Assembly: GCA_002104945.1 (NCBI GenBank)
Contig: MCFH01000095.1
Location: forward strand, 52,648-116,647
Length of the DNA: 64,000 nucleotides
Direction of reading: 5' to 3'
From: Piromyces finnis finn
Taxonomy: Eukaryota; Fungi; Neocallimastigomycota
The position numbers were made by a program, and so were the translations under genes. The notes beneath the pieces are model-generated. The model saw nothing but the letters and a program-made list of their open reading frames with translations. It was not told the DNA's origin and searched no databases. Of this stretch, positions 2 through 25,260 are shown one piece after another (positions within the stretch are counted from its first letter, which is position 1; the number at the start of each line of letters is the position of its first letter).

Positions 2-3000
2 AATATTACAGAGACGATATTTCAGGCATATTCCAATACTTCATCGAATACGGATATATATAAACTAAAAATCACAATTGGCGAGAAGACTTTCACAGAG
101 ATATTTAGGGTTATCGAAAAAGATGATATCTTTGATATATTAATTGGAATCGATTCCCTTAAAAGGAATAGGTTTAGTTTAAATTTTGTGGATGATAATT
201 TATATTACATTGATAAAAACAATTCTCCCATGAAAATTGCAGACCTCCATTATGATGTAAATCTCCAGGAATCTAAAGGGGAGGATTCAGAGGAGGAAAC
301 TATAGAAGAAACACCAATGTTAATAACAGTAGCGATGTCTACCCAGAATGAAGGAAAAGAAGGAACGTTAGAAACAAAAGAAAATATTATTAATAATATT
401 GTGAATAAAATTCCGAAAGATATTAGAGATGTAGTAAGAAAGCTATTTGATAAATTTAATCATGTTATCGCTGTTAAAACTGACGATCTGAGTAGAACAA
501 AATTACTACCTCATCGTATCAGGTTGAAGCCAAACTCGTTTCCTTTTAAACAACGAGCATATAGGCTATCAAAAGTGCAAGCAGATGCATTGAAAGAGGA
601 GTTAACCAAGCTGATTAAGAATAAATTAATTGAACCATCCCATTCATCGTGGTCGTCGCCTGTAGTCTTAGTGCCTAAGAAAAATGGAAAATACCGAATG
701 TGTGTGGATTATCGACGCTTAAATGAATGTACAATAAAGGATTCCTACGCTCTACCACTAATTGATGACATACTGTGCTACGTAGGTAAGAAAGCTGTTT
801 TGACTACTATGGATTTGTTTTCGGGTTACCACCAAGTTCCGATGTATCCTGAGGATGAAGATCTTACATGTTTTACCACTATATATGGAAACTATAATTT
901 CAAGGTAATGCCTTTCGGGTTATGTAATGCCCCAGCTACCTTCCAGAGAGAAATGAACAGGATTTTCTTCGACCTTATTGGGAAGTGTGTCTTTATTTAT
1001 ATTGATGATTTGATAGTCTTTTCCAATACAATGGAAGAACATATTAGAGATTTATCAAAGGTTTTTAAAATACTCAGGGAAAATGGTTTAAGAATCAACA
1101 TTGAGAAGTGTCACTTCTTTCAAGAAGAAGTAGAATTGCTAGGCCATGTATTATCTAAAGAAGGAATTAAACCAATTCCGGGGAAAACGCAGGTAATCAT
1201 GAACTGGCTACCACCGAAAAATGTTTCTCAATTGCGTTCGTTTTTAGGGGCTGTAAGTTACTACCGAAAATTTATTGATAAATTTGCACAATATGCTAAA
1301 CCATTATTTAAGTTATTAAAGAAAGACGAAGAGTTCAAATGGAGTCCAGAGGCGAATAATTCATTTGAAATCTTAAAATTAAGACTAATAGAAGCTCCGA
1401 TATTAATGCCACCGGATTTTGATAAACCATTCAAGATTAGAACAGATGCATCACGTAATGGGATAGGTGGAGTGATTTTACAAATAGATGAAGATGGAAT
1501 GGAGAAACCACTACACTTTGTAAGTAGGACACTGAATAAATCAGAAGAAAACTATAGTGTAACAGATTTAGAAGGGACAGCTGCATATTATTGTTCTAGG
1601 AAATTCAAGCATTATATAGTAGGAAATACGTTGGAAACTGAATTAATCACCGACCATAAACCGCTAGTTGGATTGATTAATAATAGCGAACCAACCAATA
1701 ATCGACATCTTAAATGGGTCACTACGTTTAGTATATTAAAAATCAAAGTGTTGTACGAAGAAGGAAAGAAGAATGTAATAGCTGACGCTCTATCAAGATT
1801 GACCAGTAAGGAAGAAAGTCAGTTAGCACCAAGACCAAGTCATAACAAACAAACAATCAACGTGATCGTGGAGAACAATAGTAATACTACTACTAATAAT
1901 AAAATAAGTGAGAATAATAATCAATATAAAAATATAAATGATTTTATTAATAGGAAACTTATAACTATGGATGGAATACAATACTACAAGAGTAATGGGA
2001 AACTAAGAAGAATTATAGATGATGACGAAGAAAAATTCAGACTAATTGAAGCCGCTCATTCTATCGGACATGAAGGTATATACAAGACCTATCATAGGCT
2101 AAAGAAGGAATTTTATTGGAAGGGCATGAATAACGATATAAAAATTTATATTAAGTGTTGTCCAAGATGCCAACAATTCAAGCCACAGAAATCTAACCTT
2201 TTTGTTGAAAGCATACCTACAAAGCCAGGCTTACCATTTTCAAGAGTAGGTCTTGATCTGGTAGGTCCGTTGCCAATAACAAATAAAGGCAATAAATACA
2301 TCATTGTCCTAGTGGACTATTTAACTAAATGGGTGGAGGCTGAGGCTTTGGAGAATATAGAATCCGATGATGTCATTGACTTTTTGAAGAGGGTATTTTC
2401 TCGCCATGGTATTCCAGAGGTTCTAGTAACAGACAATGGACCTCAATTTAGATCTGATAAGACGAAGGCATTCCTGGATTTACATGACGTGTACGTCCAA
2501 TACGTATCGACATACCACCCTGCATCTAATGGAGAAGTGGAAAACCGGAATAAGGAGATAATCAAATATCTGAAACTATTAGGTAATGAAGAAGATGAAT
2601 GGGATGAAATACTGCCTAGTGCATTATGGGCCCTTAGAACTTGTAAAAACGAAATTACAAAGTTCAGCAGCTTTGAACTACTATATGGACGCAAAGATCT
2701 ACAACCCTTCGAACTATCTTTGATGAAAGACAGGAATAAGTATGAGAACGAAGAGGAATATTGGATACAGAAGTTCGTGAGACATCATAAGTGGATACAA
2801 GAAGCCATCGATAATATTGAAACAGCCAATAAATTATGGAGTGACCGGAGACGACAGAGTAAACGAATGAGAGCCGCATATAAACCTGGAGATTTAGTAT
2901 TAGTTAAAGTATTCAATAGAAGGAAACTGGACCCTTATTTTACTGGACCCTTAAAAATCATAAAGAAAGAATTTAATACAGTTACAGTTTGTGATCCTAT

Positions 3001-3067
3001 TTCAGGGGAAATTGCAGAACGGAATATTCACTTAAAGAATATAATTCCATATTTTTCTGAATTGTAA
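2..3067 (+). mobile_element. pol: Ty3/Gypsy LTR retrotransposon pol (end of protease, RT, RNase H, integrase); 5' end lies outside the window
   Basis: Frame is open from base 2 (protease C-terminal DILIGIDSL). RT motifs YRMCVDYRRLN, MPFGLCNAPATFQ, FIYIDD; RNase H TDAS and TDHKPL; integrase HHCC (H630-H...C..C), VGLDLVGP, VTDNGPQF, NGEVE; GPY/F-like PYFTGP. No chromodomain. Confidence 0.97.
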
Positions 3068-5949: not shown

Positions 5950-8554
5950 TTATTTTACTAGTGTAGAATTTTCTTGATCATTAATCCTTTGTAAACTTTG
6001 ATTAAAAAATATATTATTAGGATTATCAAAAATAATATCATTTTCAATACATGTATCAGAGGTAGCATCTTCATTAATTATTTCAACAGAGGATTTATCT
6101 GGTTTACTTTTTTTATTGTTTATTTGGCTATTTTTTCGATTTTTTATAAATAACGATATATCAGGTGCATTGATGTATTGACTCAGTCGACTCTCATTAT
6201 TGGAAGAAAATGTTTCTATTGGGTATCTAAAAATATAATACAATCTTGTTCCAACTAAATAATAAACACATATAATTGACAGTATGATATAACTAATAAT
6301 AAGTAGTACATAACTTGAGAAATAGTTATAATCAACAATCTTCTTTAATGATAAAATAACAAATAAATTAATAATATAGGCAAATAACATAATATTAATA
6401 AATTTTATTTCCCCATATTTCTTTGATACTTTTTTCGTTTTTACTACCATATATAATATTGTAAAGAACTAATAGTTAAAAATAATAAAAAATTATTATA
6501 ATGTTAGTTTAATATATTAAAAATAAATATAATAGAAATTATGTATAAATAAATAAATAAACAACTAGATAAATTATAATAAAAATAAATAAATAAACAA
6601 CTAAATAAATATAATAAAAATAAATAAATAAATAATTCTATATATATAGAATTTTATAAATATTTACCATTATCCTATAAATTATTCGATCAAGATATTC
6701 AAGCATATACCCATCTTTAAATTTACATTTTGGATGACGAAAAGTTGTTATATTACCAAAAGTTTCTATATAGAATTTAAATTTTATAATATAGAATAAA
6801 CCCGATAGCAGCATAAGGAGCATCACAATAATTATTATTTTAAATAAACGTTTATTATCTAATTTTTTACCAAAGTTGACCCTTGACTTATTATTATATA
6901 TGGTATAAATTCGAAAGGTGATCACAAGTATTGGTAGCATAACCAAGTTGGACATTATGATGTTATTAATAAACATTATCTGACACATTGTTGTCGATTT
7001 TGTGTAAACCTCAAATATAGGAGTTAACGTATACAATACGATTCCTATAATAATATAACAGCAAAGGACTGGCGAATATGATTTCAAATAGGGGTGTTTT
7101 TTATATTTTAGCAATAATATTAATGGAATTAATGATCCTAAAATAGTAATTATGAATGATATATGAAAGGAAATCTTTATGGTATCTTTTCTTTTTGAGT
7201 GATCAATGACCAACATGTTAATATTTTCAAATATGTTTGAAATATAGGAATAGCTTAAACCAGCCAAGAAATTCCTTATGGCTTGAGGTAAAAGTAATCT
7301 TATTTCGATAAATGGTGGATTATATTTACCTTTAAATGCTTCTTTAATGTTAATTCTATTCATATTATCCATTAATTCACATAGTTCTGAATTTTCATGA
7401 CAATACCTTCCAATAGACTCAATTTGATCCTTTTTTGACACATCAAAAGTTGGAATAGCACCAAAATTATCAGCTCTAAAAATTTGCATTTCTTCAGATA
7501 TTAAATTAAGAGTGACATTTTTAAGTAAATCAGCCGAATAATTACTATTTTTATTAATAATTGCATACTTTATATTTGTAACTGTTGTGTTTTTTGGTGG
7601 TAGTGATACCAAAAAAGTTTTATTTTTTGTTTCAATATATTTATAATGGGATGCTTTTCCTCTTGTTAAGAAAACCTCATTATCTAATAGAGAATTATAT
7701 ATATTTTTTTGTGTTTTCTCAAAAGGTTTATCTATACTAAATGTAGATAGCTTTGTGATAAAGGATTGAAAGGAATTAAATAAATCAAGAGATTTTTCTC
7801 CATAAAAAATAGTTTCAAAGTTTGTACCATTTATTTTAATATTATATTTATTTGTGGTATATTCTATAAAGAAATCTAATAGTTCATCATCATCATTTAA
7901 ATTTAATTCGATATATGCGGCGGGATTTGAATTAGTTGATTTGTTATTTGATGGATTGACCATTAATAACACATCATCCCATGTTAAACTATTTATACTT
8001 TTATCCACTAAATTTATTTTATTATAGTATATTAAATTAAAATCTTGTTCATACGGCAATCCGAATAAATCTTTATCCGTTAAAAACCCATTTTCTAAGG
8101 CATTGGCAGTATGATAGGAAAATCGTGTCGTGTTATAGATGTTTGCTAAATTCATATAATTATCTCTAATATTTCTTATATCATACTGATGATTGGCAAA
8201 ACCACTTTCGATGAAAGAAACATCATTAAATAAAAACTTTTCATCCACTATTAGGATATCATAATTTGATTTTTTTATTTCTTTTATTATAAATTCACTA
8301 TAGGTTTCTTTTGAAAAAGAATTATTTCTTGAGAAACAAGTAAAATTTAAATGAATTCTATTTAATTCTGAATATGAATTATAAAATTTCAAAAAAAAAT
8401 TATTTTGTAAAGTTGAATAATTTGTACAATTAAAAAATTCTCCCGTATTAGGTTCTTCAATTAACAATTGAAGATTTATTTCATTCGCATAACATTTCAT
8501 AAAAAATATTATACAATAAATAAAAGTAATTAAATTAATTATACTCAATTTCAT
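5950..8554 (-). CDS. Class C-like (7tm_3) GPCR with N-terminal solute-binding-protein-like ectodomain; exons 8554-6668 and 6468-5950
   Basis: Signal peptide; SBP-like motifs DILIVD and LFGLPYEQDFNLIYYN; hydrophobic helices with KHPYLKSYSP and TFRIYTIYNN typical of class C 7TM; phase-0 GT-AG intron 6667-6469 joins RIM to FFTILYMVVKT in frame. Confidence 0.85.
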
Positions 8555-10466: not shown

Positions 10467-12811
10467 GTTGTTGCTGTAGTAATTTTTCGAATCTTATATA
10501 ATTATAAAAAAGTATATATACATACATTATTCTATTCTATTAAACATTATTATATATTAGAAATTATATTATCTTCAATTTATGAATTCAATATATATTG
10601 AATTACATCTTTAATTTCTTTAAATAAAAAATAGTTAATAGTATATGTATGATATCCTATATAAACATATAAATAGCTAGTTTTTAATTTTTTTTATTGA
10701 TAAAACTGTTTTTCTATAATTTTTATTATTACTACTTCTTTAGTTGACATTGTAAGATTGATATGTTTTTTAGTTTATTTATTAAATAAGTAAAAGAAAA
10801 TTTTTTATTTTCTAGTTTAAAGAAGCTTGCTACTTTATCAAAAATATTAATATATTCAATTTTTTTTTAAAATATCAAAAGCAAAATAAAATTATCAGTT
10901 TTAATTAATTATTTCATGACTTCTTTTTAATGGTTTTTTTTTTTAATATTTTATTAATTATTTTTGTTAATTTTTTTAACTTGAAGATTGTTAGATTCAT
11001 TTATTTCTTTTACTATTTCATTAATATGTATCATCAATAGTACTTTCATTTCTCATTTAGAGTGTTATGGTGTAAAGATTCTAATAAAGTATTATGTTAT
11101 AATTTTCTTGATTGATTTTTTTTTGAAGTCATCTCGTTATTATTTTTATGTGTGTTCAATACTATTTTATATATTTTGTTTTGTTCTTTCTTTCTTTTTT
11201 TTATTTATTATTTAGTATTATTAAATTTACAAAATAAAAATTTAAAAATAAATAATTTCTAGTATTGTTGTTTATTTAAAAATTGTTTTAAACTAATATT
11301 CAAGAAATAAAAAGAGTTTATAAAAATTCACTTAAAACCATCCTGTTCATATAATTTTTTCAAACTTTTATAATATAATCAAGAATAATATAAAAATAAA
11401 AAATTACTTTATAATGTCCATATCACTAATATTTATTAATAAAAATAAAAGTACATCCTTTTTCTTTTTTTCTTTTTTTTTTTTTTTTGTTAATACCAAT
11501 TCAATTTTAACTAGTAGATATACTTATTTGGTCAAATATTTACCTTTCACTGATATACTTAAATATATTAACAACAAATATTTTATGAATATTTTATTAA
11601 GATTTTATTTTTTCTTATAATTAATAATAATAATAAATTTTACTATTTCGATACAACCTTCATACATACTATAATATTAATAATTTAATTTTATTATTTT
11701 TGTAATTTTTATTTGAAAATAAACGTTAAATAATATTATGAATGTATTTTTTTAACAATCCATAGCAATAGCAATATAATAAAAAAAATCTAGTCTTTTA
11801 TTAAATATATATATTAATAAGTCCTCTTTTTTTTTTTTTTTATTACTACATCATTTTAATAATATGCTGTAGTAGTATATATATTTTTTATAATAAATAA
11901 GATTAAAAAATAAAACGGATAACATTAAATGTATGCTTTAGATTTTTACTACACCTACACTAATAAATGGTTATATGAATTTATAATGGTAAAAAAAAAA
12001 AAAAAAAAGCAACTTTTATGTATATTTGTGCATTTATTTGTTATCTATTTATTATAAATAAAAAGAAAAGTTTAAATAAATTGGTTAAAAGATATTTTAA
12101 TTATTAATTATAAAAGAAAAAAAAAAAGGCATATTACACTTTAATTTCTTTATATAATAATTATATAATAAAAATAGATATTAAGAAGTAATTTAAATAT
12201 TTTATTTTAAAATATTTTTTATTATATGATATTCTTTTATATATTCTTTGATATATTTAAAATGAGGAGAAAAAAAAAAAAAGTTAAATAGTACTGATGG
12301 TGATGGTAGTGGTGGTAGTAGTGGGTGGTTATTTTTAAAAATTTATATAAATTTAAAATTTAATAATAATTAAAATTAAATAATTAAACTTATTAAAATT
12401 AAACCAAACTTTTTGTTTAAATTTTTATTTTAAACCTTATTTTTTTTTACATTTCATTGATTGTCCATTTGAAATGAAATTTAAAAGTTTTTACCCAACA
12501 CTTACATTAGTATTAAAAATATAATATCCAAAAAAGAGAGGGGAAGAGTTTAACCTTTATTTATCATTGTAGGTGTAATTAATTAATTAATTTTAAGATT
12601 ACATTAATATTTTTATTTTTTTACCAATATATTATTTAGTATATGTCATTAAATATAAATTTATAAATTTATATGTCCATTAGTTTTATTTTGTATTATA
12701 TATTTTTTTAAAAAGTAAGTATTAAATATAAAAATAACATAAAAAATGTAATATTTAATAATTCCTATTTTTTAGTAATAAAATAAAATAATAATAAAAA
12801 GATTTATAATC

Positions 12812-15346
12812 ATGAAGAAAGAAATTTCTCTCACACCAAAAGAGAAAATTGAAAAATATAATATTTTTATGAAAATATGTGAAGCCATTAGAAATATTGA
12901 TGAAAATAAACAATTTTTGTGTATAGAAACGGAATTTTTTGATATTGAAAAAAAAGATTTAACTGAAATTGGATGGTGTATTTTTAAAAAAGATGGTACC
13001 ATAGTAAAAAATAGTCACTTTTTAATAAAAGAGATTTTTAATTCAGTAATAAATCCAAATTCTGAAATACTAGAGTTAAATGCCATTAAAAATAAATTAG
13101 AAATTGATATTAAAAGTGTAAACTATATAGTTGGCTATGAAATAGATGATATATTAAACACTATAAATATTTTAGAAAATACAGATATAAAATCAAAATT
13201 TGTTAAAATAAAAGATTCATTTATTCCAGAATATGGTATAATTGATACTGATGACTTATGTTTTGGAGGAAGTATAGATAAAAGTATAAAAAATTTGAAA
13301 TATCCCTATGAAAAGTCATTTAACATTGGTAAAATATTTATTCTATTTTATTTTATTTTATTTTTTTTTTTAGTGTTAAAACACATAATAATAATATATT
13401 ATATTTATGATTTTATGCGTATCGTAGTGTTCTTTATATTCTCTGTTTATAATTTGTTTTTATTTTTCTACTTTATTATTTTTTCATTATTTATTTTTCC
13501 TTTATAAATATATATATGGATAAAGGTGTTAATATATATATATTTATTAATAATATATTCTTTCTAATTTTTTATATTAAAAAAAATGTGGAATATGGAA
13601 TGGTATCAGAGGAAGATATAGTAAATACAATAACATTTTTATTAAAAATTATTTATAATGATTATGCAAAATTAATTAACGCCATCAGACATAATATTAG
13701 TGAAAATAGATTTTTTATGTGTATAGACGTCGAATCAAGTAAAAATAATCCAAATATACTATCAGAGTTGGGTTGGTGTATTTTTCAAAAGGATGGAACA
13801 GTTAAAAAAAAGAAGCATGTCATTGTAAAAGAAAATATGGAAAAAGAATTTGATGGGTTAGAGAATGACAAACATTACTTGATTGGAAAACCGGAGATTC
13901 AAGACATCACCTCAATTAATGAGGAATTAAAAAATGATTTAAAAGAAATAAATTATATAGTTAGTCAAAGAATTAATCTTGATTTAAACCTTTTAAAAAC
14001 AATTAATATTGATATATCAAACTTTGTTTTAATGAATAACCATAAAGTTCCTCAATACGGTATTATAGATATCATGAATTTATATGATGGAATCTTCTTT
14101 TCAAATTGTCAAGGATTGGAACAAGGTTTAACTAAATTAGGAATTTCATATGATGAATTAGATAATACAGGTAAGGAAAAGAAAAAAATATATAATATAT
14201 ACATTTTATTGTATAAAAAAGTATTTTAAGAGGAAAAAAAAAATACGTCCGAAGATTATAGATACCCTAATATCTTTTATTATATTAATTAATCAATAAT
14301 AAAAATATTTATATATTTTAATATTTTATTTTATTTTTTATTTTTTATTTTATTTTATTTTATTTTATTTTATTTTATTTTATTTTATTTTATTTTATTT
14401 TATTTTATTTTATTTTATTTTATTTTATTTTATTTTATTTTATTTTATTTTATTTTATTTTATTTTATTTTATTTTATTTTATTTTATTTTATTTTATTT
14501 TATTTTATTTTATTTTATTTTATTTTATTTTATTTTATTTTATTTTATTTAATACTAACTCAATATTCATTTATTCAATGTATATGTATCTTTCTTATAT
14601 ATAGGCAATAAAACACATTATATAATGGATTTCTTTTTCAAAGTAATTGATAAAGACAAACCAGAAAAATATAAAGATTTTGTTCATTTAATTAACAGTA
14701 TAAGAAGTAGAATTGATAAAGAAAAATTATTTTTATGCTTAGATATTGAAGCGTATGAACTTGAAAAAAAGTTTTTAACTGAATTTGGTTGGTGTATTTT
14801 TAAAAAGGATGGGGTAATCCTAGAAAATAAACATTTTATTGTTAAAGAAAATATGAAATATCATAATGGTATTCATGTACCAGATAATAGAGAAAACTAT
14901 TTATTTGGAAAATCTGAAATAAGGGAATTAAAAGAAATTGAAGAAGAATTAAAAATCGATGTTGCCAAAGTTAATTATTTGGTTGGACAAGGAGTTATCA
15001 GTGATATTCGTTTTCTTAAAAAAATTAAATTCAAGACTTCAAAATTTAAAAAAATGAATGGTAAATATGTTCCAGAATTTGGAATAATTGATACCATGGA
15101 TTTGTATTCAGGATATTTCCTTAAACAAGGTGTTAGTCTAGAAAAAATGTTAATTAAATTAAATATTTCATACGATAAGTTACATAATGCAGGTAATAAA
15201 AAAAAACCTTTTTATAAAATTTGAAAAGAAAAAAAAAAAGATTGATATTTAATAATATGTATATTATATAATATTAATAGTTATAATATAATATTATAAA
15301 GATATATATTAACGATATTAATTCCAAATTATTGATTTTATAAAAT

Positions 15347-15389
<43 letters not shown>

Positions 15390-18300
15390 CAAACTATAAT
15401 GTAATAAATAATATATTATATAAAAAAGGTAATGATGCAAACTATACCATGCAAGTGTTCTTAAGAATTATTAATGGATCAAATTCAACAAAAACTATAA
15501 CATCATCAACAACAAAATCGTCAACTCAAGATCAACATCAAAAAGAAGATAGTAGTAATCTTGAAAAATTCAGAAATTTAGTAAAAATGATTAATGCCAT
15601 TCAACATAATATCAGTAAAAATCAATTATACTTAAGTTTTGATATTGAAGAATACGAACAAAATAAAAAATTAATTACAGAAATTGGATGGTGTATTTTC
15701 AAAAAAGATGGAACAATTAGGAAAAAGAAACATGCTATTGTCAAAGAAAACGTTTATCGTAGAAATAGTATAAAAAAACCAGATAATAAAGATGATTATT
15801 TATTTGGAGTATCAGATATTCAAGAGTTAAAGACTATTGAAGAAGAATTAAGAAATGATGTTGAAAAAGTTAGTTTCTTAGTATGTCATGGTCTAGGAAA
15901 GAATGATATTCGTTATTTGAAATCCATTAAAATTGATATATCTAAATTTATCAAAATGAAACTTAATAGACCTCCATATTATGGTTTAATTGATACCATG
16001 GACTTATATTCTTGTCTTTTTGATACTAAAGGTGTAAAATTGGAAAATAGTTTAACAAAATTGGAAATACCATTTAATAAAATTTATAATTCAGGTAAAA
16101 AATTAAAAAAAATAATAGAATATAAAACACTATTTACACAGAATTCTATATATAAATATATAAAGACTTTATAAAAAAATTTTATTTATAATAAAATAAA
16201 TGTACTATTTCACTATTTATAAATATTAATGTTTAAAAAATTATAAATATTTATATTATATTATATAAATCAATATAGCACAATTAATATTAACAATTTA
16301 AAATTATATTATAATTCTTCATAAAAAAAAAAAACAATTTTTTTAGGTAATAATGCTATGTATACTATGGAATTATTTTTAAAATTAATGGACAAGTACA
16401 AAGGAAATGCTCAATTATCTCAGGAAGTAAATTTAAAAAGTATTACTCATTATATGCAAACTCATACAAAACAGAAAAATAATAGCTTATTAAAGGAAAG
16501 TAAAAAGGAAAAGAGTGAGAAAAAGGAAGATTCAAATCAATTCCAAGAACAAACAAAATTGGTTGAAGCCATTCGTACCATGAATAATGATAAATCATAT
16601 TTATGTTTAGATATTGAAGCCTATGAGTTTGATCAAAAGAAATTAACTGAATTTGGATGGTGTATTTTTAAAAAAGATGGTACAATTATAAAAAAGAAGC
16701 ATACCAATGTAGAAGAATATTTAAAATTCAGAAATGGAAAACATGTTCCTGATAATAAAGAACATTTCTTATTTGGACAATCCGATATTCAAAAATTAGA
16801 AGTGGTAGAAGAAGAATTGAAAAAGGATATTGAAAATGTCAATTATATTGTTGGACATGGTATTAAAAGTGATATAAATTACCTTAAATCAATTAATGTT
16901 AACACATCTAAATTTTTAACAATGAAGAATCAAAATATTCCAGAATTCGGTGTTATTGATACCATGGATATTTATTCAGGACAATTTAATACTAAAGGTG
17001 TTGGATTAGAAAAATGTTTAATTAAATTGGAAATTCCGTATTGTAGATTACATAATGCAGGTAATCCTTTTATTTATTGTGTTGTTATCCTATTCCCTAT
17101 TTATAATTTTTTTAATTCAATAGCTTTTTTTTTATTATTATTAATTATATGATTAAATAAAAATAAAAAAAACATAATTTAAAATAAAAATTATTTTTTT
17201 TATAGGTAATGATGCAATGTTTACAATGCAAGTTTTTCTAAAGATTATAAATAAATCAAAAACAGTACCATTACAATTATCCATTAATTCAAATAATGAA
17301 AATACTAATGAATCAGAAAAGCAAAAGGATAATAAAGGAAAAGATATGAATGAAGTTAAAGAAATAAAAGAAAAGAAAGAAATAGAAGAAACAAAGAAAG
17401 AAAAGAATGATATTAAATTAACTAAACCAAAAAAAGAAAAAAAAGATGAATCTATTCAATTTCGAGAAAATGAAAAATTAATTGAAGTTATACGAGCTAT
17501 TGATAATGATAAATTATATTTATGTTTAGATATTGAAGCCTATGAGTTTGATCAAAAGAAATTAACTGAATTTGGATGGTGTATCTTCAAAAAAAATGGT
17601 TCCATTTTGAAAAAGAAACATGCTAATGTAAAAGAATATTTAAAATTCAGAAATGGTAAATATGTTCCTGATAATAAAAAACATTTCTTATTTGGACAAT
17701 CCGATATTCAAAAATTAGGAGTGGTAGAAGAAGAATTGAAAAAAGATATTGAAAGTGTCAATTATATTGTTGGACATGGTATTAAAAGTGATATAAATTA
17801 CCTTAAATCAATTAATGTTAACACATCTAAATTTTTAACAATGAAGAATCAAAATACTCCAGAATTCGGTGTTATTGATACCATGGATATTTATTCAGGA
17901 CAATTTAATACTAAAGGTGTTGGATTAGAAAAATGTTTAATTAAATTGGAAATTCCATATTGTAGATTACATAATGCAGGTAAATAAAAAAACTATTTTT
18001 TTTATTAATCAAGTATTAAAAAAAGTAACCATATCGAATTTTATAGTATTATTTTATTACAACCAGTAAATTAATTAATAAACGAATAATATAAACAAAT
18101 TATAATAATTGACTATTTCTTTCTTTTTTAATTTTATTATTATCTATTTTCTTTAAATTTAATTTTAATAGGTAATGATGCCATATTTACTATGCAAGTA
18201 TTTTTAAAAATTATTAATACTTTAGAAACTGTACCATTTCAAATAACACAAGAAACATTAAAAGAAAATGAAGATGATTCCGATAAAAGTTTACGTTCAA

Positions 18301-19777
18301 GAAAACAAAAAAGTGGATCCGATAAATCTATGGAACTTTCAAAGTTAATAAAAATGCTAAAAAATAATATTAGTAAGAATAAATTATTTTTATGCATAGA
18401 TATTAAATCCTATGAAAAAGATCAATCCATCTTAACAGAATTTGGATGGTGTGTTTTCCAAAAAAATGGAACAATCGAAAAAAGAAAATGTGTCATTGTC
18501 AAAGAAAATATGAATTATCAAGAAGATGAATCATCAAATAAAAATTATTTATTTGGAGAAAGAGAGATTCAAGAATTAAATAGTATTAAAACTGAATTAA
18601 TGAATGATATTGAAAAAGTACATTATATTATTGGGTACAATATAAATAATATAGCTCATCATCTGACATCCATGAAAATAGATATCACAAAATTTATTAA
18701 TATGAAAAGTTGTAAAATTGAAGAATTTGGTATGGTGGATATTATGGATATTTATTTAGGACATTTCCATACACAAAGTGCAAGTTTAGAGGAGGATTTA
18801 ACAAAACTCAAAATTCCATATGATAAAATTTATAATGCTGGTAAATATTTATATATAATAAAAAAAAGTTTTTTTTCTTTATTTCTTGTTACTAGTCCCA
18901 TTTTATTTTTTTTATGAATACCTTTTATATTTTATTTTATCGTATATTATCTTTTTTTTGTGTATTTCTATGATTTATAATTAATTAAATTATCAAAACT
19001 CTATATTAATATTTTTTTTTTTAATAATAGGTAATGCATCCATCTTTATATTTCAAATTTTCATAAAAATTGTAAATAATCCAAAAGAAGTTCCTTTACA
19101 ATTACCTATAGAATTATTAAAAAATAATAAATTTCAAAAAGGGAGTAATCAACAATCCACGTCATCCTCCACCTCCACCTCAAAAAATAAAAAAAAATTT
19201 AAAAATGATACGGAAAGGTTTAAAGAGTACAATAAAATAATTCATACAATTCAATGTAACATTAATAAAAATAAATTATATCTTAGTTTGGATATTGAAG
19301 CCTTTGAACAAAATCAAAAAATATTAAAAGAATTTGGATGGTGTATTTTTAAAAAGGATGGAACCATTACAAAAACAAAACATGTTATTGTAAAGGAACA
19401 TATGAATTATCATAATGAAAAAAATGTACCAGATAATAGAAATTATTATTATTTTGGTAATTCAGAATATATGGAATTAAAAAGTATAGAAGAAGAATTA
19501 AGAAAGGATATTGAAAAAGTAAGTTTCTTAGTTGGTCAAGGTATCAATAATGATTTACGTTTTCTAAAATTTATTAATATTGATACTTCAAAATTTGAAT
19601 ATTTGAAAAGCTATCAAATTCCAAAATATGGTCTTATTGATACCATGGATATAAACTCTGGATATTACCTTGCAAATGGAATTAGTTTAGAAAAAAGTTT
19701 AATAAAATTACAAATTCCATATGATAGATTACATAATTCAGGTAATAAATATTTGTATATATATATACAAATCAAAA

Positions 19778-19808
<31 letters not shown>

Positions 19809-19827
19809 TAATATAATTATTATTATT

Positions 19828-19864
<37 letters not shown>

Positions 19865-22800
19865 TTTATTTAAACAAATATTTAAAAATCTAAAAAAAAA
19901 AAAGATATTATTAATTTAATATTTATTTTATTTGTTATAATTTTATTTAAATGTTTTTTTTTTTTTTCAAAAGGAAATGATGCCATATTTACTATGCAAG
20001 TCTTTCTAAAAATGATTAATGATTGTAAAACGGTACCACTTCAATTAACAGATGAAAGGATAAAAGAAGTGAACTCTAAAGTAGAAAATGATAGTGGATC
20101 ATCCTCCACTAAACAAAAAGCCAAAAAATTCAAGAATGAAGCTGTAAAATATGATGATTTTGAAAAATTAATTAATAGTATTAAATTTAACATTGGTAAA
20201 AATAAATTATATATATGTTTTGATATTGAAGCCTATGAATTAGATCATAAGATTTTAACAGAATTTGGATGGTGTATTTTTAAAAAAGATGGAACCATTA
20301 TTAAGGAAAAGCATGCCATTGTTAAAGAACATTTAGAGTATCATAATGGAACCTTGGTTCCCGATAATAGAGATAATTATTTATTTGGTACTTCTGTCAT
20401 AGAAGAGTTAAAGGTGATTGAAGAAGAATTAAGAAAAGACATAGAAAGCGTTCATTATTTAGTAGGTCAGGGAATAAGTAATGATTTACGATACCTTAAA
20501 TCTATTAATATTGATACCTCAAAATTTGTTAGTATGAAAGATTCTAAAATTCCTAAATTTGGTATTATTGATACCATGGATTTATATTCTGGAAAATTTT
20601 ATACCCAAGGAGTAAGTCTTGAAAAATGTTTATTGAAATTAAAAATTCCATACGATAAATTACATAATGGAGGTAAAGAATAAAAATATTCTTTTTCTTT
20701 TTTTTTTATTTAATATTTATACTATAGTTTTTACAATATAATTTATGATGAGTGATAATATAATAAAACTTTTTTTTCATAAGGTTTAAAATAAATAACT
20801 AATGAAATATAATATATAATGAAATATATATAAAAATATAAATATGTTTAGGTAATGATACCATATTTACAATGCAAGTTTTTATGAAAATTATAAATAA
20901 TCCTAAAAAAGTACCCTTACAACTTTCAAAAAAATTATTAAAACAAAATAATGAACAATTTAAGAGTGGCAAAGATAAATTATCTCAACAACCATCAAAA
21001 TCTAAAAAACAAAAGGAAGAAGGAATACAATATAAGGATTTTATCAAATTAATTCATACCATAAAATTTAATATCGGGAACAATAAAAGCTATTTATGTT
21101 TAGATATTGAAGCCTATGAACAAAACCAATCCATTTTAACGGAATTTGGATGGTGTATTTTCAAAAAAAATGGAACTATTACTAAAAAGAAGCATGTTAT
21201 AGTGAAAGAAAATATGAATTATCATAATGGTAAAAAGGTTCCAGACCATCGAAATAATTATTTATTTGGGGAATCTGAAATTCAAGAATTAAAAGATATT
21301 GAAAAAGAACTTAAAAAAGATATTGAAAGTGTGAATTATATTGTAGGTCAAGGAATTAATAATGATATTCGATACCTTAAATATATTCATGTTAATATGG
21401 ATAAATTTGTTAGTATGAGAAATTCAAAAGTTCATAAATTTGGTATTATTGATACAATGGATCTCTACTCTGGTTATTTCAACGTTCAAGCCGTTAGTCT
21501 AGAAAAAAGTTTGTTAAAATTAAAAATTCCATATGATAAATTACATAATGGAGGTTATTAGTATTTTATTTTTCATATTTTATTTGTTTACACCATATTA
21601 TTATAATGAATATATTAAATATGTATATTATATATAAAAAAATAATATTTTTTTTATCTTTTGTATATATGAAGTCTTACTAACACAATATTTATTCCTT
21701 TTTTATATCAATTCATAAATCAATTAATCAATCATTCAATCAACATGAAATATATGAATATGATGAATACTAATTCAATTAAAAAAAATAAATAAATAGG
21801 TAATGATTCTGTATTTACAATGCAAGTCTTTTTAAAAATTATATGTAATTTAGAAAAGGTTCCACTTCAATTACCAAAAGAATTTTTAAAAGAAGAAAAG
21901 GAAGAAGAAATGATAAAAGAAAATTCATCTGAAAATTCAATACTAAAAAATAAAGTCAAAGAAGAATCCGAAATATATGAAGAGTATTCAAAACTAATTA
22001 GTACCATTAGACATAATATTAGTGAAAATAAATTATTTATGAGTATTAGTATCAGGACACCAAATAATGATAATAATACTGATCTTGATGATAAAGAATC
22101 AATAAAAATATCAGAATTAGGTTGGTGTATATTTGAAAAAGATGGTTCTGTCACCAAGAAAAAGCATATTCTTTTCAAAAAGTATAGCACAAACCAAAAT
22201 GTTCCAGATGCTTATTTATTTGGGACAACGGAAACCGAAGAAGAAATCAGTAATGATGTGATAGAAGAATTAAAAAAAGATATTGAAGGTATAAATTATT
22301 TAATTGGTCAAGGAATTGAAAGATCCTTACATTTACTTAAATCTATGACAATTAATGTCAATAAATATGTTATTATGAAAACGCCTAAAATTCATAAATA
22401 CGGTGCCATTGATACCATTGATTTGTATTCAGGTCAATTTAGCACAAAATTTAAAAGTTTGAGTGAAAGTATGAAAAAATTACAACTCCCTTGTGATAAT
22501 TTAAATAATTCAGGTAAATATATAAATATATATATATAAAAAAAAGAAAAAGAAAATATAAATTTATTACTATTTTTTATTTTTAAAAATATATATCAAT
22601 AAATATGTAAATACACCATATACATATAAAGCATTTATATATTTATTAATATTCTAATTATATAAATTTAATGTTTAATAATTTATATATATATATATAT
22701 ATATATTATGTTTTTTTTATTTCTTTTTTTTAAAAAAAAAATAAAGGTAATGATACAATATTTGCAATGCAAATATTCCTAAGAATTATTAACAATTCTA

Positions 22801-22901
22801 AAAAAGTTCCATTACAATTAAAAAAGCCGAAAATGAAAGATGAAAATCCTGATGAAGAAATGAAAAAAGAACTAGATCAAGCTGATTTATTAAAAAATTA
22901 A
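12812..22901 (+). CDS. 12-exon gene encoding ~2489 aa with 11 tandem Gfd2/YDR514C/QIP-like DEDDh 3'-5' exonuclease domains
   Basis: Exons: 12812-13328, 13610-14170, 14605-15192, 15429-16094, 16347-17060, 17206-17979, 18172-18840, 19031-19741, 19974-20672, 20852-21553, 21800-22513, 22747-22901. All introns are GT-AG and phase 1, all internal exons are multiples of 3, total 7470 nt, stop TAA at 22899-22901. Repeat motifs LDIEAYE..LTEFGWCIF, G.G..D..YL, IDTMD, LHNAG|NDA. Family assignment is from motif recall. The exon 2 acceptor is the least certain. Confidence 0.88.
14325..14550 (+). repeat. (TTTTA)n pentanucleotide microsatellite in intron 2 of the exonuclease gene
   Basis: Direct reading. 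Confidence 0.97.
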
Positions 22902-24498: not shown

Positions 24499-25260
24499 TT
24501 AAACATCTGTTTTTTTTAACAACATTAAAAAAGCGTATTCTAAAAATGAATCATCTATATCAGGAATGTTTGTATAAAAAAAGGGATAATAATAGATTTC
24601 ATCATTATTGTAATCATGTACAAAACCTTCTTTATCTGTAATTGAATCCTCCATACTCTTGAACAGTTCTCTTTGCATATAACCTGTAGATGAAGTATTG
24701 AGAGAAGATGGAATAATACCAACACGGCTTGATTTGGAATGTATAAATAGTTCCTTTGCTGTAAGTCCTTCGGAATAGCAACTTTGCAAAACGGCTTGAA
24801 TTCCTACTGACATTAAATTTTGAATTACATTATCAATTTTCCCTTTCGAACCACTATTAACAATATTGATTGAATTATTGTTAATTAATTTAGATAAATA
24901 TTCTAATAGTAGATAATTTTTTAAATAGTACTTTCTTATTTCTCTTATCTCTTTACTGTCTTTGTCGTGAGAAAGAATTGAGGAATCTAAATTAAGAAGT
25001 CGTATTGCCGATAAAGTATCAAGAATTTTTTTCCAAAATGGATGTAAATTCATTTTCATTGCCAGGGTCTGGTATACAATCTAAAATGGAAATACTAATA
25101 ATGTGAAATAAATTGTATTCATGCACCATACGTTGTACATCCCACATAAATTTTAAATAAAAAATTGGTACCATAATGAGTAATAGAATATAATAATACA
25201 GTTTGATTGCTATCATTAATAGTGTGAAGTAGAATAACCACGATCTACTAAAATTAAACT
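24499..25260 (-). pseudogene. Frameshifted fragment of a compact multisubunit RNA polymerase largest-subunit (beta'/Rpb1-like) gene, probably from a linear plasmid or virus
   Basis: NSGSKGKIDNVIQNLMSVGIQAV ~ SGSKGS..NI.QM..CVGQQ; EGLTAKELFIHSKSSRVGIIPSSLNTSSTGYMQRELFKSMED ~ GLTP.[29 protein letters not shown].MED; upstream frames give FMWDVQRMVHEY..SISILDCIPD. No introns; at least 2 frameshifts. Confidence 0.8.

Follow-up and report, generated by a model that had tools for sequence, protein, structure and literature searches.

A probable single gene encoding eleven tandem QIP/Gfd2-type DEDDh units, six with intact catalytic residues, in the anaerobic gut fungus Piromyces finnis

The known QIP/Gfd2-type exonucleases either assist Argonaute as single-domain proteins or have no assigned role, and DEDDh enzymes in general have DNA or RNA as substrates. 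The RNase T / DnaQ-type enzymes are bacterial single-domain proteins, of which RNase T acts as a homodimer; they share the superfamily fold with the units described here and carry D-E-D-H-D at equivalent motifs, at an identity of only 14–18%. Gene knockdown in anaerobic fungi at present relies mainly on RNAi. The QIP exonuclease domain of Neurospora crassa (PDB 4WBQ) has the same DEDDh fold and catalytic motifs as the P. finnis units, but QIP contains one such domain, whereas eleven are fused in P. finnis, five of them without the full catalytic set. Of the two, only QIP is known to bind Argonaute and to remove the siRNA passenger strand (cited in PMC7528652 and PMC5796279). GFD2 has been termed a QIP ortholog, and in N. 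castellii RNAi was little affected when GFD2 and its paralog were deleted (PMC7528652); membership of the family alone therefore does not prove a role in RNAi. For a related anaerobic fungus, QIP homologs have been listed and RNAi is described as working, and anaerobic gut fungi have been reported to be without an RNA-dependent RNA polymerase (PMC5796279).

Singletons of the Gfd2/YDR514C family (e.g. BCR36DRAFT_412845, in the same genome) carry the PF21762 domain found in the array. They consist of one domain and a low-complexity tail followed by a stop, without a VPLQL motif, whereas the array units read through into the next unit. In Sporobolomyces johnsonii, a 668-aa protein (GAA5887158.1) has the same domain internally duplicated, with H-N-x-G-N-D in both copies; it has two copies only, comes from a distant fungus and clearly represents an independent event. 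None of the best 150 matches from 1.84 billion representative proteins had more than two matched stretches, which bears out the expectation of the preliminary description that relatives are as a rule single-domain, and a literature search on tandem DEDDh exonuclease domains found nothing. The eleven-fold concatenation reported here has not been described before for the QIP/Gfd2 family, and is only partly annotated publicly (the last 569 residues and three junctions).

The window analysed is a 64,000-nt stretch of the P. finnis assembly (GCA_002104945.1, contig MCFH01000095.1). Positions 12812–22901 on its plus strand probably constitute a single 12-exon gene encoding eleven QIP/Gfd2-type DEDDh units in a row, six of them intact. 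The gene is assigned to the P. finnis nuclear genome, and its predicted product is 2,489 aa (about 290 kDa). Eleven stop-to-stop frames lie on this strand, each of which closes just past [HYFDN]-N-x-G, with a GT donor within the Gly codon, and the next frame restarts at AG|G(T/C) AAT GAT to give G-N-D-x-x-F/Y-T-M-Q-V-F-L-K-I-I. When joined, the 12 exons amount to 7,470 nt with no internal stop; at the exon base composition (stop probability per codon 0.103), a run of 2,489 codons would stay open by chance with a probability of about 1e-117. All 11 introns are phase 1, bounded by GT..AG and 145–434 nt long, and interrupt the H-x4-D motif at one shared spot (HNAG|ND). The GC content of the introns is 7–14%, versus 21–26% for the exons, and retention of any one intron would bring an in-frame stop after 2–59 codons. 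The preliminary description had proposed eleven ORFs joined by eleven same-position phase-1 introns into a frame of ~2489 aa, each ORF being cut at H-N-x-G and receiving its catalytic Asp and last helix from the next exon. Both proposals hold: the frame is exactly 2,489 aa, and the missing end of the domain profile (after about position 174 of 188) is encoded by the following exon.

Exon 1 (12812–13328) carries the start codon and the degenerate unit 1 (Pfam DEDDh_C E 0.037); its ATG is also present in an uncultured relative (L011), and in both a stop lies close upstream. Exon 2 (13610–14170) supplies the last helix of unit 1 and the degenerate unit 2 (E 4e-8). The acceptor of intron 1 (13609/13610, CAG with a weak pyrimidine tract) was picked by homology with L011 and is less sure than the other junctions. 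Exon 3 (14605–15192) contains the unit 2 helix and unit 3, which has the full D-E-D-H-D set (E 3.5e-26). Units 1–3 adjoin directly, without a linker; from unit 3 onward, the units are separated by Lys/Glu/Ser/Asn-rich linkers of 25–62 residues, for which disorder is predicted. Exon 4 (15429–16094) thus comprises the unit 3 helix, a linker and the degenerate unit 4 (E 1.2e-17), and the same arrangement of preceding helix, linker and new unit is found in exon 5 (16347–17060; unit 5, full catalytic set, E 1.3e-26), exon 6 (17206–17979; unit 6 after the longest linker, full set, E 1.2e-27), exon 7 (18172–18840; unit 7, degenerate in P. finnis only, E 2.7e-9), exon 8 (19031–19741; unit 8, full set, E 8e-22), exon 9 (19974–20672; unit 9, full set, E 8.6e-27), exon 10 (20852–21553; unit 10, full set, E 2.6e-25) and exon 11 (21800–22513; unit 11, degenerate, 23.6 bits). 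A short conserved motif (VPLQL) follows the last helix of units 5–11. Exon 12 (22747–22901) provides the last helix of unit 11, the VPLQL motif, a short acidic tail and the stop codon (TAA, 22899–22901). The C-terminus it encodes is identical in a public protein model (P0172), and this ending is kept in L011 and in a further related sequence (L010).

Profile searches and predicted structures place each unit in the QIP/Gfd2-type DEDDh family, with Neurospora QIP as the best solved relative. The Pfam check per repeat called for in the preliminary description gave a PF21762 (DEDDh_C) match in all exons, running from profile position 2 (46 for unit 11) to 173–174 of 188, except in exon 1, where it is limited to positions 2–29. 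Nine units (2–10; 34–98 bits) pass the curated cut-off of 27 bits, and units 1 (14.6 bits) and 11 (23.6 bits) fall below it; both nevertheless match unit 9 as clear homologs (E 2.8e-26 and E 7e-49, respectively). A profile built from unit 10 and its relatives matched 4wbq_A with an E-value of 1.6e-41 and H-N-A-G-N-D-A aligned, in agreement with the family first suggested. In the AF2 model of unit 10 (pLDDT 95.7), the helix encoded by the next exon sits inside the fold, and a Foldseek search with this model returned QIP (4WBQ) as the top match (E 2.8e-11, 26% identity, TM 0.71 by target length), followed by RNase T, DinG and DNA polymerase proofreading domains. In a tandem model of units 10 and 11, both domains were predicted with confidence, unit 11 adopting the DEDDh fold though degenerate, while the linker had a pLDDT <50 (pTM 0.50), consistent with the flexible linkers proposed earlier. 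A complex prediction for two copies of unit 10 scored 0.00, which gives no answer either way on self-association.

The claim of eleven tandem nuclease domains stands as regards eleven homologous units but not as regards catalysis, since only six (units 3, 5, 6, 8, 9 and 10) have the full five-residue set D-E-D-H-D (D-x-E, D, H-x4-D) in P. finnis. In units 1, 2, 4, 7 and 11 at least one catalytic residue is replaced. The catalytic positions read E-E-I-F-D in unit 1, D-K-I-Y-A in unit 7 of P. finnis and S-R-S-N-D in unit 11; unit 2 has His replaced by Asp and the last Asp by Lys, and unit 4 has His replaced by Tyr and the last Asp by Asn. The degeneracy of units 1, 2, 4 and 11 is shared by all three species compared (P. 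finnis, L011 and a second uncultured relative, L007), whereas unit 7 is degenerate in P. finnis alone and intact in L011 and L007. In comparison with L011, dN/dS across exons 1–11 was 0.10–0.43 (0.31, 0.18, 0.12, 0.22 and 0.17 for exons 1, 2, 3, 4 and 11, and highest, at 0.43, for exon 7), figures that are rough, as dS of 0.65–1.4 is near saturation in so AT-rich a genome. The degenerate units stay open and, judged by these comparisons, appear to be under purifying selection.

The 11-unit array is present in both uncultured relatives. L011 has 11 units, the terminal exon and 11 introns at matching positions (a model of 2,496 aa), and L007 shows units 2–11, with intron 10 lost so that a single genomic frame (P0024) spans units 10 and 11. 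Between species, exon nucleotide identity is 67–84%, the introns vary in length and align poorly, and the units cluster by array position. No stop or frameshift was found in any unit of the three species, and splice sites are retained at every junction. A search for related loci with a narrow alignment yielded six loci; among relatives, neighbouring units are fused by intron loss both in L007 and in L001, the latter a smaller array whose units could not be matched one-to-one to those of P. finnis. Further support comes from L018, a 5.3-kb intron-free contig close to L007 in which units 5–11 lie in one 1,601-aa frame. It is colinear with the L007 exons (units 5–11 and the terminal exon) at 92–96% nucleotide identity and breaks exactly at the predicted junctions. 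The source of L018 is a relative rather than P. finnis, its ends match nothing and are probably chimeric, and there is one frame break near its 5' end; it is an mRNA-like continuous contig joining units 5–11 in a near relative. Another intron-free sequence (L010/P0173) spans unit 10, unit 11 and the end.

The public P. finnis annotation truncates the gene to its last quarter. The 569-aa model BCR36DRAFT_190160 (P0172) is an exact substring of the 2,489-aa model (residues 1921–2489) and uses introns 9–11, including the junctions on both sides of exon 10. It starts at an internal Met within exon 9 (unit 9), and shorter transcripts could thus exist. Searches for homologous proteins with P0024 and P0172, covering lengths up to about 1,000 aa, gave no further multi-unit public models. 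Small sequence runs (X1–X4) contain 0.48–0.70 of the sampled words, as compared with an exon share of 0.74 for the stretch; at a guess, this word share fits transcript assemblies. From conserved frames and splice sites, rather than from transcripts, we infer that units 1–4 are on the same mRNA as the remainder.

These data also bear on whether the full frame is made at all. The locus might consist of clustered genes or sub-blocks that are expressed separately, with internal promoters or poly(A) sites in the introns giving one- to three-domain products, of which the annotated 569-aa protein would be an example, so that the full frame would rarely or never be produced. That the sole public model covers only the last 569 aa and begins at an internal Met would fit this, as would the in-frame ATG that follows directly after the acceptor in most exons (in the T-M-Q-V-F motif). 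Yet a product running from such an ATG to the next intron would have neither the catalytic Asp nor the helix that ends the fold, and the G-N-D-x-x-F-T codons upstream of the ATG are conserved and needed to complete the preceding domain. Moreover, across 2,489 codons and three species no stop separates the last helix of a unit from the next unit, the intron-free L018 links seven units in a near relative, and units have been fused through intron loss in L007 and L001. We consider separate expression quite unlikely. Very unlikely, in our estimation, is a polyprotein precursor cut in the linkers, perhaps near VPLQL, into single-domain nucleases, such that the array would serve as a dosage amplifier rather than a scaffold. 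The long, variable, predicted disordered linkers and the conserved motif after the last helix of units 5–11 are what such a precursor might look like; however, VPLQL is present after the final unit as well, where nothing is left to release, units 1–3 have no linker between them, a protease site of known kind was not identified, and purifying selection keeps inactive units that a pure dosage device would not need.

A single intact reading frame could still encode something other than a partner of Argonaute, or something no longer in use. A DNA-directed exonuclease unrelated to Argonaute (acting, for example, on retroelement cDNA or other ssDNA in the manner of TREX1) is unlikely on balance: RNase T, DinG and DNA polymerase proofreading domains are the structural neighbours after QIP, and the genome is rich in LTR elements, with a Ty3/gypsy pol frame within the window, but QIP, described as a remover of the siRNA passenger strand, is closest by both sequence and fold, and a DNA-specific feature was not identified. 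It is most improbable that the array is a decaying relic, in which tandem duplicates are turning into pseudogenes and the degenerate units are functionless. Catalytic residues are missing in five of the 11 units, and the loss in unit 7 is recent, with the highest dN/dS; against this, no unit in three species has a stop or frameshift, splice sites are retained at all junctions, and dN/dS is 0.17–0.31 for units 1, 2, 4 and 11, which, though degenerate, are orthologous by position.

The single gene probably arose from a single-copy paralog that already had a phase-1 intron inside H-x4-D. Such paralogs exist in the P. finnis genome: the four singletons read of five (C150, C13, C173 and C146; C35 was left out) share the phase-1 intron at HNAG|ND, and singleton paralogs are 40–56% identical to unit 9. 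A segment from the exon 2 tail through exon 1 and the intron would have been duplicated in tandem and in frame, taking the intron along with each unit; this would explain why the last catalytic Asp and C-terminal helix of each unit lie in the following exon. On this account, the locus is an example of tandem gene copies becoming a single giant reading frame by way of a split-motif intron; arrays of this type elsewhere have probably been fragmented by automated gene callers.

The encoded protein would be a flexible, multivalent 3'-5' exonuclease in which several active heads act on 3' ends and the conserved inactive heads may bind nucleic acid or a partner. Homology with Neurospora QIP would make small-RNA duplexes or precursors handled with Argonaute the likeliest substrates, and the genome contains three Piwi-domain loci; it is from homology that we infer enzymatic activity, an RNA substrate and the RNAi or anti-retroelement role first suggested. 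The fixed pattern of live and dead domains, kept in at least three species, makes the array a natural test case for the role of inactive nuclease domains and, if the protein acts in RNA silencing, would bear on how RNAi operates in anaerobic fungi. More speculatively, and with a low chance of being right, the array could be a mixed nuclease machine, covalently linked and confined to anaerobic gut fungi. In it, units 1, 2, 4 and 11 would be adaptors for small RNA or Argonaute, six or seven active modules would trim or degrade many 3' ends simultaneously, and RNA silencing or the control of retroelements would thereby be strengthened in this lineage specifically. The domain-coding DNA of unit 5 is 87–100% identical to that of unit 6; if the array were such a mixed machine, gene conversion between these two units and the varying number of units between genera would reflect ongoing adaptation.

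Eleven long stop-to-stop frames lie on the forward strand between window positions 12782 and 22901. Each ends a few codons past the motif [H/Y/F/D/N]-N-x-G, whose glycine codon, GGT, carries a GT donor behind its first base; each following frame opens with G(T/C) AAT GAT directly behind an AG acceptor, giving G-N-D-x-x-F/Y-T-M-Q-V-F-L-K-I-I. Joined in this way, twelve exons (12812–22901) amount to 7,470 nt, or 2,489 amino acids, with no internal stop; this bears out the single uninterrupted frame of ~2489 aa put forward in the preliminary description, together with its 11 introns at the same position, all of which are phase 1 and GT..AG. The introns are 145–434 nt long with a GC content of 7–14% (versus 21–26% in exons), and retention of an intron leads to a stop after 2–59 codons. 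Because the exon base composition predicts a stop at every tenth codon, the chance of an open frame of this length is ~1e-117. The acceptor of intron 1, set by homology with a relative, is the sole soft spot in the exon model, and we regard the gene structure as modelled as highly probable. Intron 2 is the longest (434 nt, versus 141 nt in L011, a metagenome contig from an uncultured relative) owing to a long (ATTTT)n microsatellite at 14330–14550.

Six lines of evidence point to a single gene. The public P. finnis protein BCR36DRAFT_190160 (P0172; NCBI, 569 aa) is an exact substring of the model (residues 1921–2489) that takes in introns 9–11 along with the terminal exon and begins at an internal methionine in unit 9; public annotation therefore confirms three junctions, while truncating the gene at that point. 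In L011 the orthologous array is complete, with eleven units plus terminal exon (model of 2,496 aa), and its eleven introns, likewise phase 1 and GT..AG, match those of P. finnis in position. The contig of a more distant uncultured relative (L007) holds units 2–11, and on it units 10 and 11 are fused into one genomic open frame (P0024) because intron 10 is missing. The 5.3-kb contig L018, which reads as one frame of 1,601 aa, behaves like spliced mRNA, its source being closely related to L007. Colinearity extends over the L007 exons for units 5–11 plus the terminal exon (92–96% nucleotide identity), and the breaks in the alignment fall exactly at predicted exon ends. The ends of L018 (1–125 and 5076–5298) are without a match to L007, the 3' part being another, more GC-rich frame, and there is one frame break close to the 5' end; these features are taken as assembly errors, the ends being probably chimeric. 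A 1,539-nt sequence from another relative (L010) is intron-free and runs over units 10 and 11 as far as the stop. In the comparison of P. finnis with L011, individual exons have dN/dS values of 0.10–0.43 and are 67–84% identical at the nucleotide level, whereas introns align poorly and differ up to threefold in length. Four small P. finnis sequence runs, far below the size of the genome (56.46 Mb assembled in 232 contigs), hold 0.48–0.70 of the sampled words, the exon share of the stretch being 0.74; this is consistent with transcript assemblies, as a hint only. The predicted continuity of units 1–4 with the remainder is argued from frames, splice sites and selection across two or three species.

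The assignment of the repeats to the QIP/Gfd2 family holds, as supported by Pfam, structural and profile matches and by the description of GFD2 as the QIP ortholog in PMC7528652. Repeat by repeat, the Gfd2/YDR514C-like domain DEDDh_C (PF21762) was found in every exon, with E-values of 1e-17 to 1e-27 for units 3–6 and 8–10, 4e-8 for unit 2 and 3e-9 for unit 7; units 11 (6e-5) and 1 (0.037) fell under the cut-off. In all units but unit 1, where the match is limited to the first 28 profile positions, it breaks at position 173–174 of 188, which leaves each of these exons without the domain's end. An AlphaFold2 model of the complete unit 10 (residues 95–310 of P0172; mean pLDDT 95.7) has the helix from the next exon (model residues 186–202) fully built into the fold. 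Among PDB structures the model is matched best by the Neurospora QIP exonuclease domain (4WBQ; E 2.8e-11), with DinG, RNase T and proofreading domains ranking behind; the profile made from unit 10 plus relatives matched the QIP chain with E 1.6e-41, H-N-A-G-N-D-A being aligned.

All units of P. finnis, L011 and L007 were aligned with the single-domain paralogs and read at the catalytic positions. Six P. finnis units (3, 5, 6, 8, 9 and 10) retain the full D-E-D-H-D set, and the other five are degenerate: 1 (E-E-I-F-D), 2 (D-E-D-D-K), 4 (D-E-D-Y-N), 7 (D-K-I-Y-A) and 11 (S-R-S-N-D). In both relatives units 3 and 5–10 are full; units 2, 4 and 11 are degenerate in each, as is unit 1 in L011 (off the contig in L007). 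The decay of unit 4 in L007 is unlike that in P. finnis and L011. Degenerate units remain open and keep their splice sites, with dN/dS of 0.17–0.31; for unit 7, degenerate in P. finnis only, it is 0.43.

In a maximum-likelihood tree, units 1, 2, 3, 4, 9, 10 and 11 cluster by position across species, and the eleven-unit layout is therefore older than the split of P. finnis from the L011 and L007 species. For units 5 and 6, by contrast, the clustering is by species. The DNA that codes for these two domains (16520–17060 versus 17440–17979) is 87–100% identical within each of the three species, and the identity falls off in linker and intron, a pattern that points to recurrent gene conversion confined to the domain; for the metagenome contigs, collapsed repeats in the assembly could be an added cause. 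Elsewhere in the genome there are five single-domain DEDDh_C loci. The four that were read have a phase-1 intron at HNAG/ND, as in the array, and a second exon consisting of the helix and a low-complexity tail before the stop. Since these paralogs share the intron, the array is best explained by a putative tandem duplication, in frame, of a stretch that starts inside exon 2 and takes in exon 1 and the intron, from which identical intron positions and the completion of each unit by the next exon would follow.

Among 1.84 billion representative proteins unit 9 had 534 matches, and none of the best 150 contained more than two matched stretches. Multi-unit proteins among these 150 were pieces of the arrays described here (P0024, P0002) and one true two-domain protein of 668 aa (GAA5887158.1) from the basidiomycete yeast Sporobolomyces johnsonii, which is independent of the array and has H-N-x-G-N-D in both copies. 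Searches with longer array pieces found no further multi-unit public models. This lack is partly an artefact, because prokaryotic gene callers cut arrays of this kind apart at the introns, and in eukaryotic pipelines they end up truncated. In a Neocallimastix-like organism there is a smaller array of different build (L001 260–2800, L022 1–1279, and the piece P0174), in which two units are fused with no intervening intron and the junction after the pair is spliced in the transcript-like L022. A frame break in L001 between the linker frame (1651–1983) and the last unit (1886–2593) persists in L022, so that this unit may stand in a frame of its own or depend on a frameshift. In the P. finnis array a known family takes a new, conserved form: eleven-fold, with live and dead domains in a fixed mosaic.

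Units 1–3 adjoin directly, and later units are separated by spacers of 25–62 residues rich in Lys, Glu, Ser and Asn. In an AlphaFold2 model of units 10–11, built on a shallow alignment, both domains were confident and the linker had pLDDT <50 (pTM 0.50), consistent with domains that are independent and flexibly tethered. Each N-terminal helix has a basic K-rich patch in front of it. The motif V-P-L-Q-L is conserved past the C-terminal helix of units 5–11 and in the terminal exon in three species (17240–22830), and is missing after units 1–4 and from the single-domain paralogs.

As a flexible chain of eleven QIP-type heads, six of them predicted to be active and five inactive but conserved, the protein would be a multivalent 3'–5' exonuclease; the inactive heads would most likely bind nucleic acid or a partner, since selection keeps them. 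That the intact units are active nucleases working within one polypeptide is a reading we somewhat favour. By homology, the likeliest setting would be small-RNA handling with Argonaute. QIP homologs and working RNAi have been reported in anaerobic fungi, with a clear RdRP lacking (PMC5796279), and the genome has three Piwi-domain loci. An RNAi-linked role for the array protein is a tentative possibility, and two points caution against leaning on the Argonaute setting. DEDDh enzymes may prefer DNA. In N. castellii, moreover, RNAi was barely affected by deletion of QIP orthologs (PMC7528652).

No link between the array and its neighbours was seen in the window surroundings. Upstream lie a Ty3/gypsy pol frame (188–3064, + strand; open for 959 aa), with reverse transcriptase, RNase H, integrase zinc-binding and integrase core domains, and a class C GPCR-like gene (6638–8551, − strand; 637-aa frame, 7tm_3 match at E 1.8e-10). 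Downstream is an isolated Rpb1 fragment (24499–25056, − strand), a 185-aa frame with domains 4 and 5 only.
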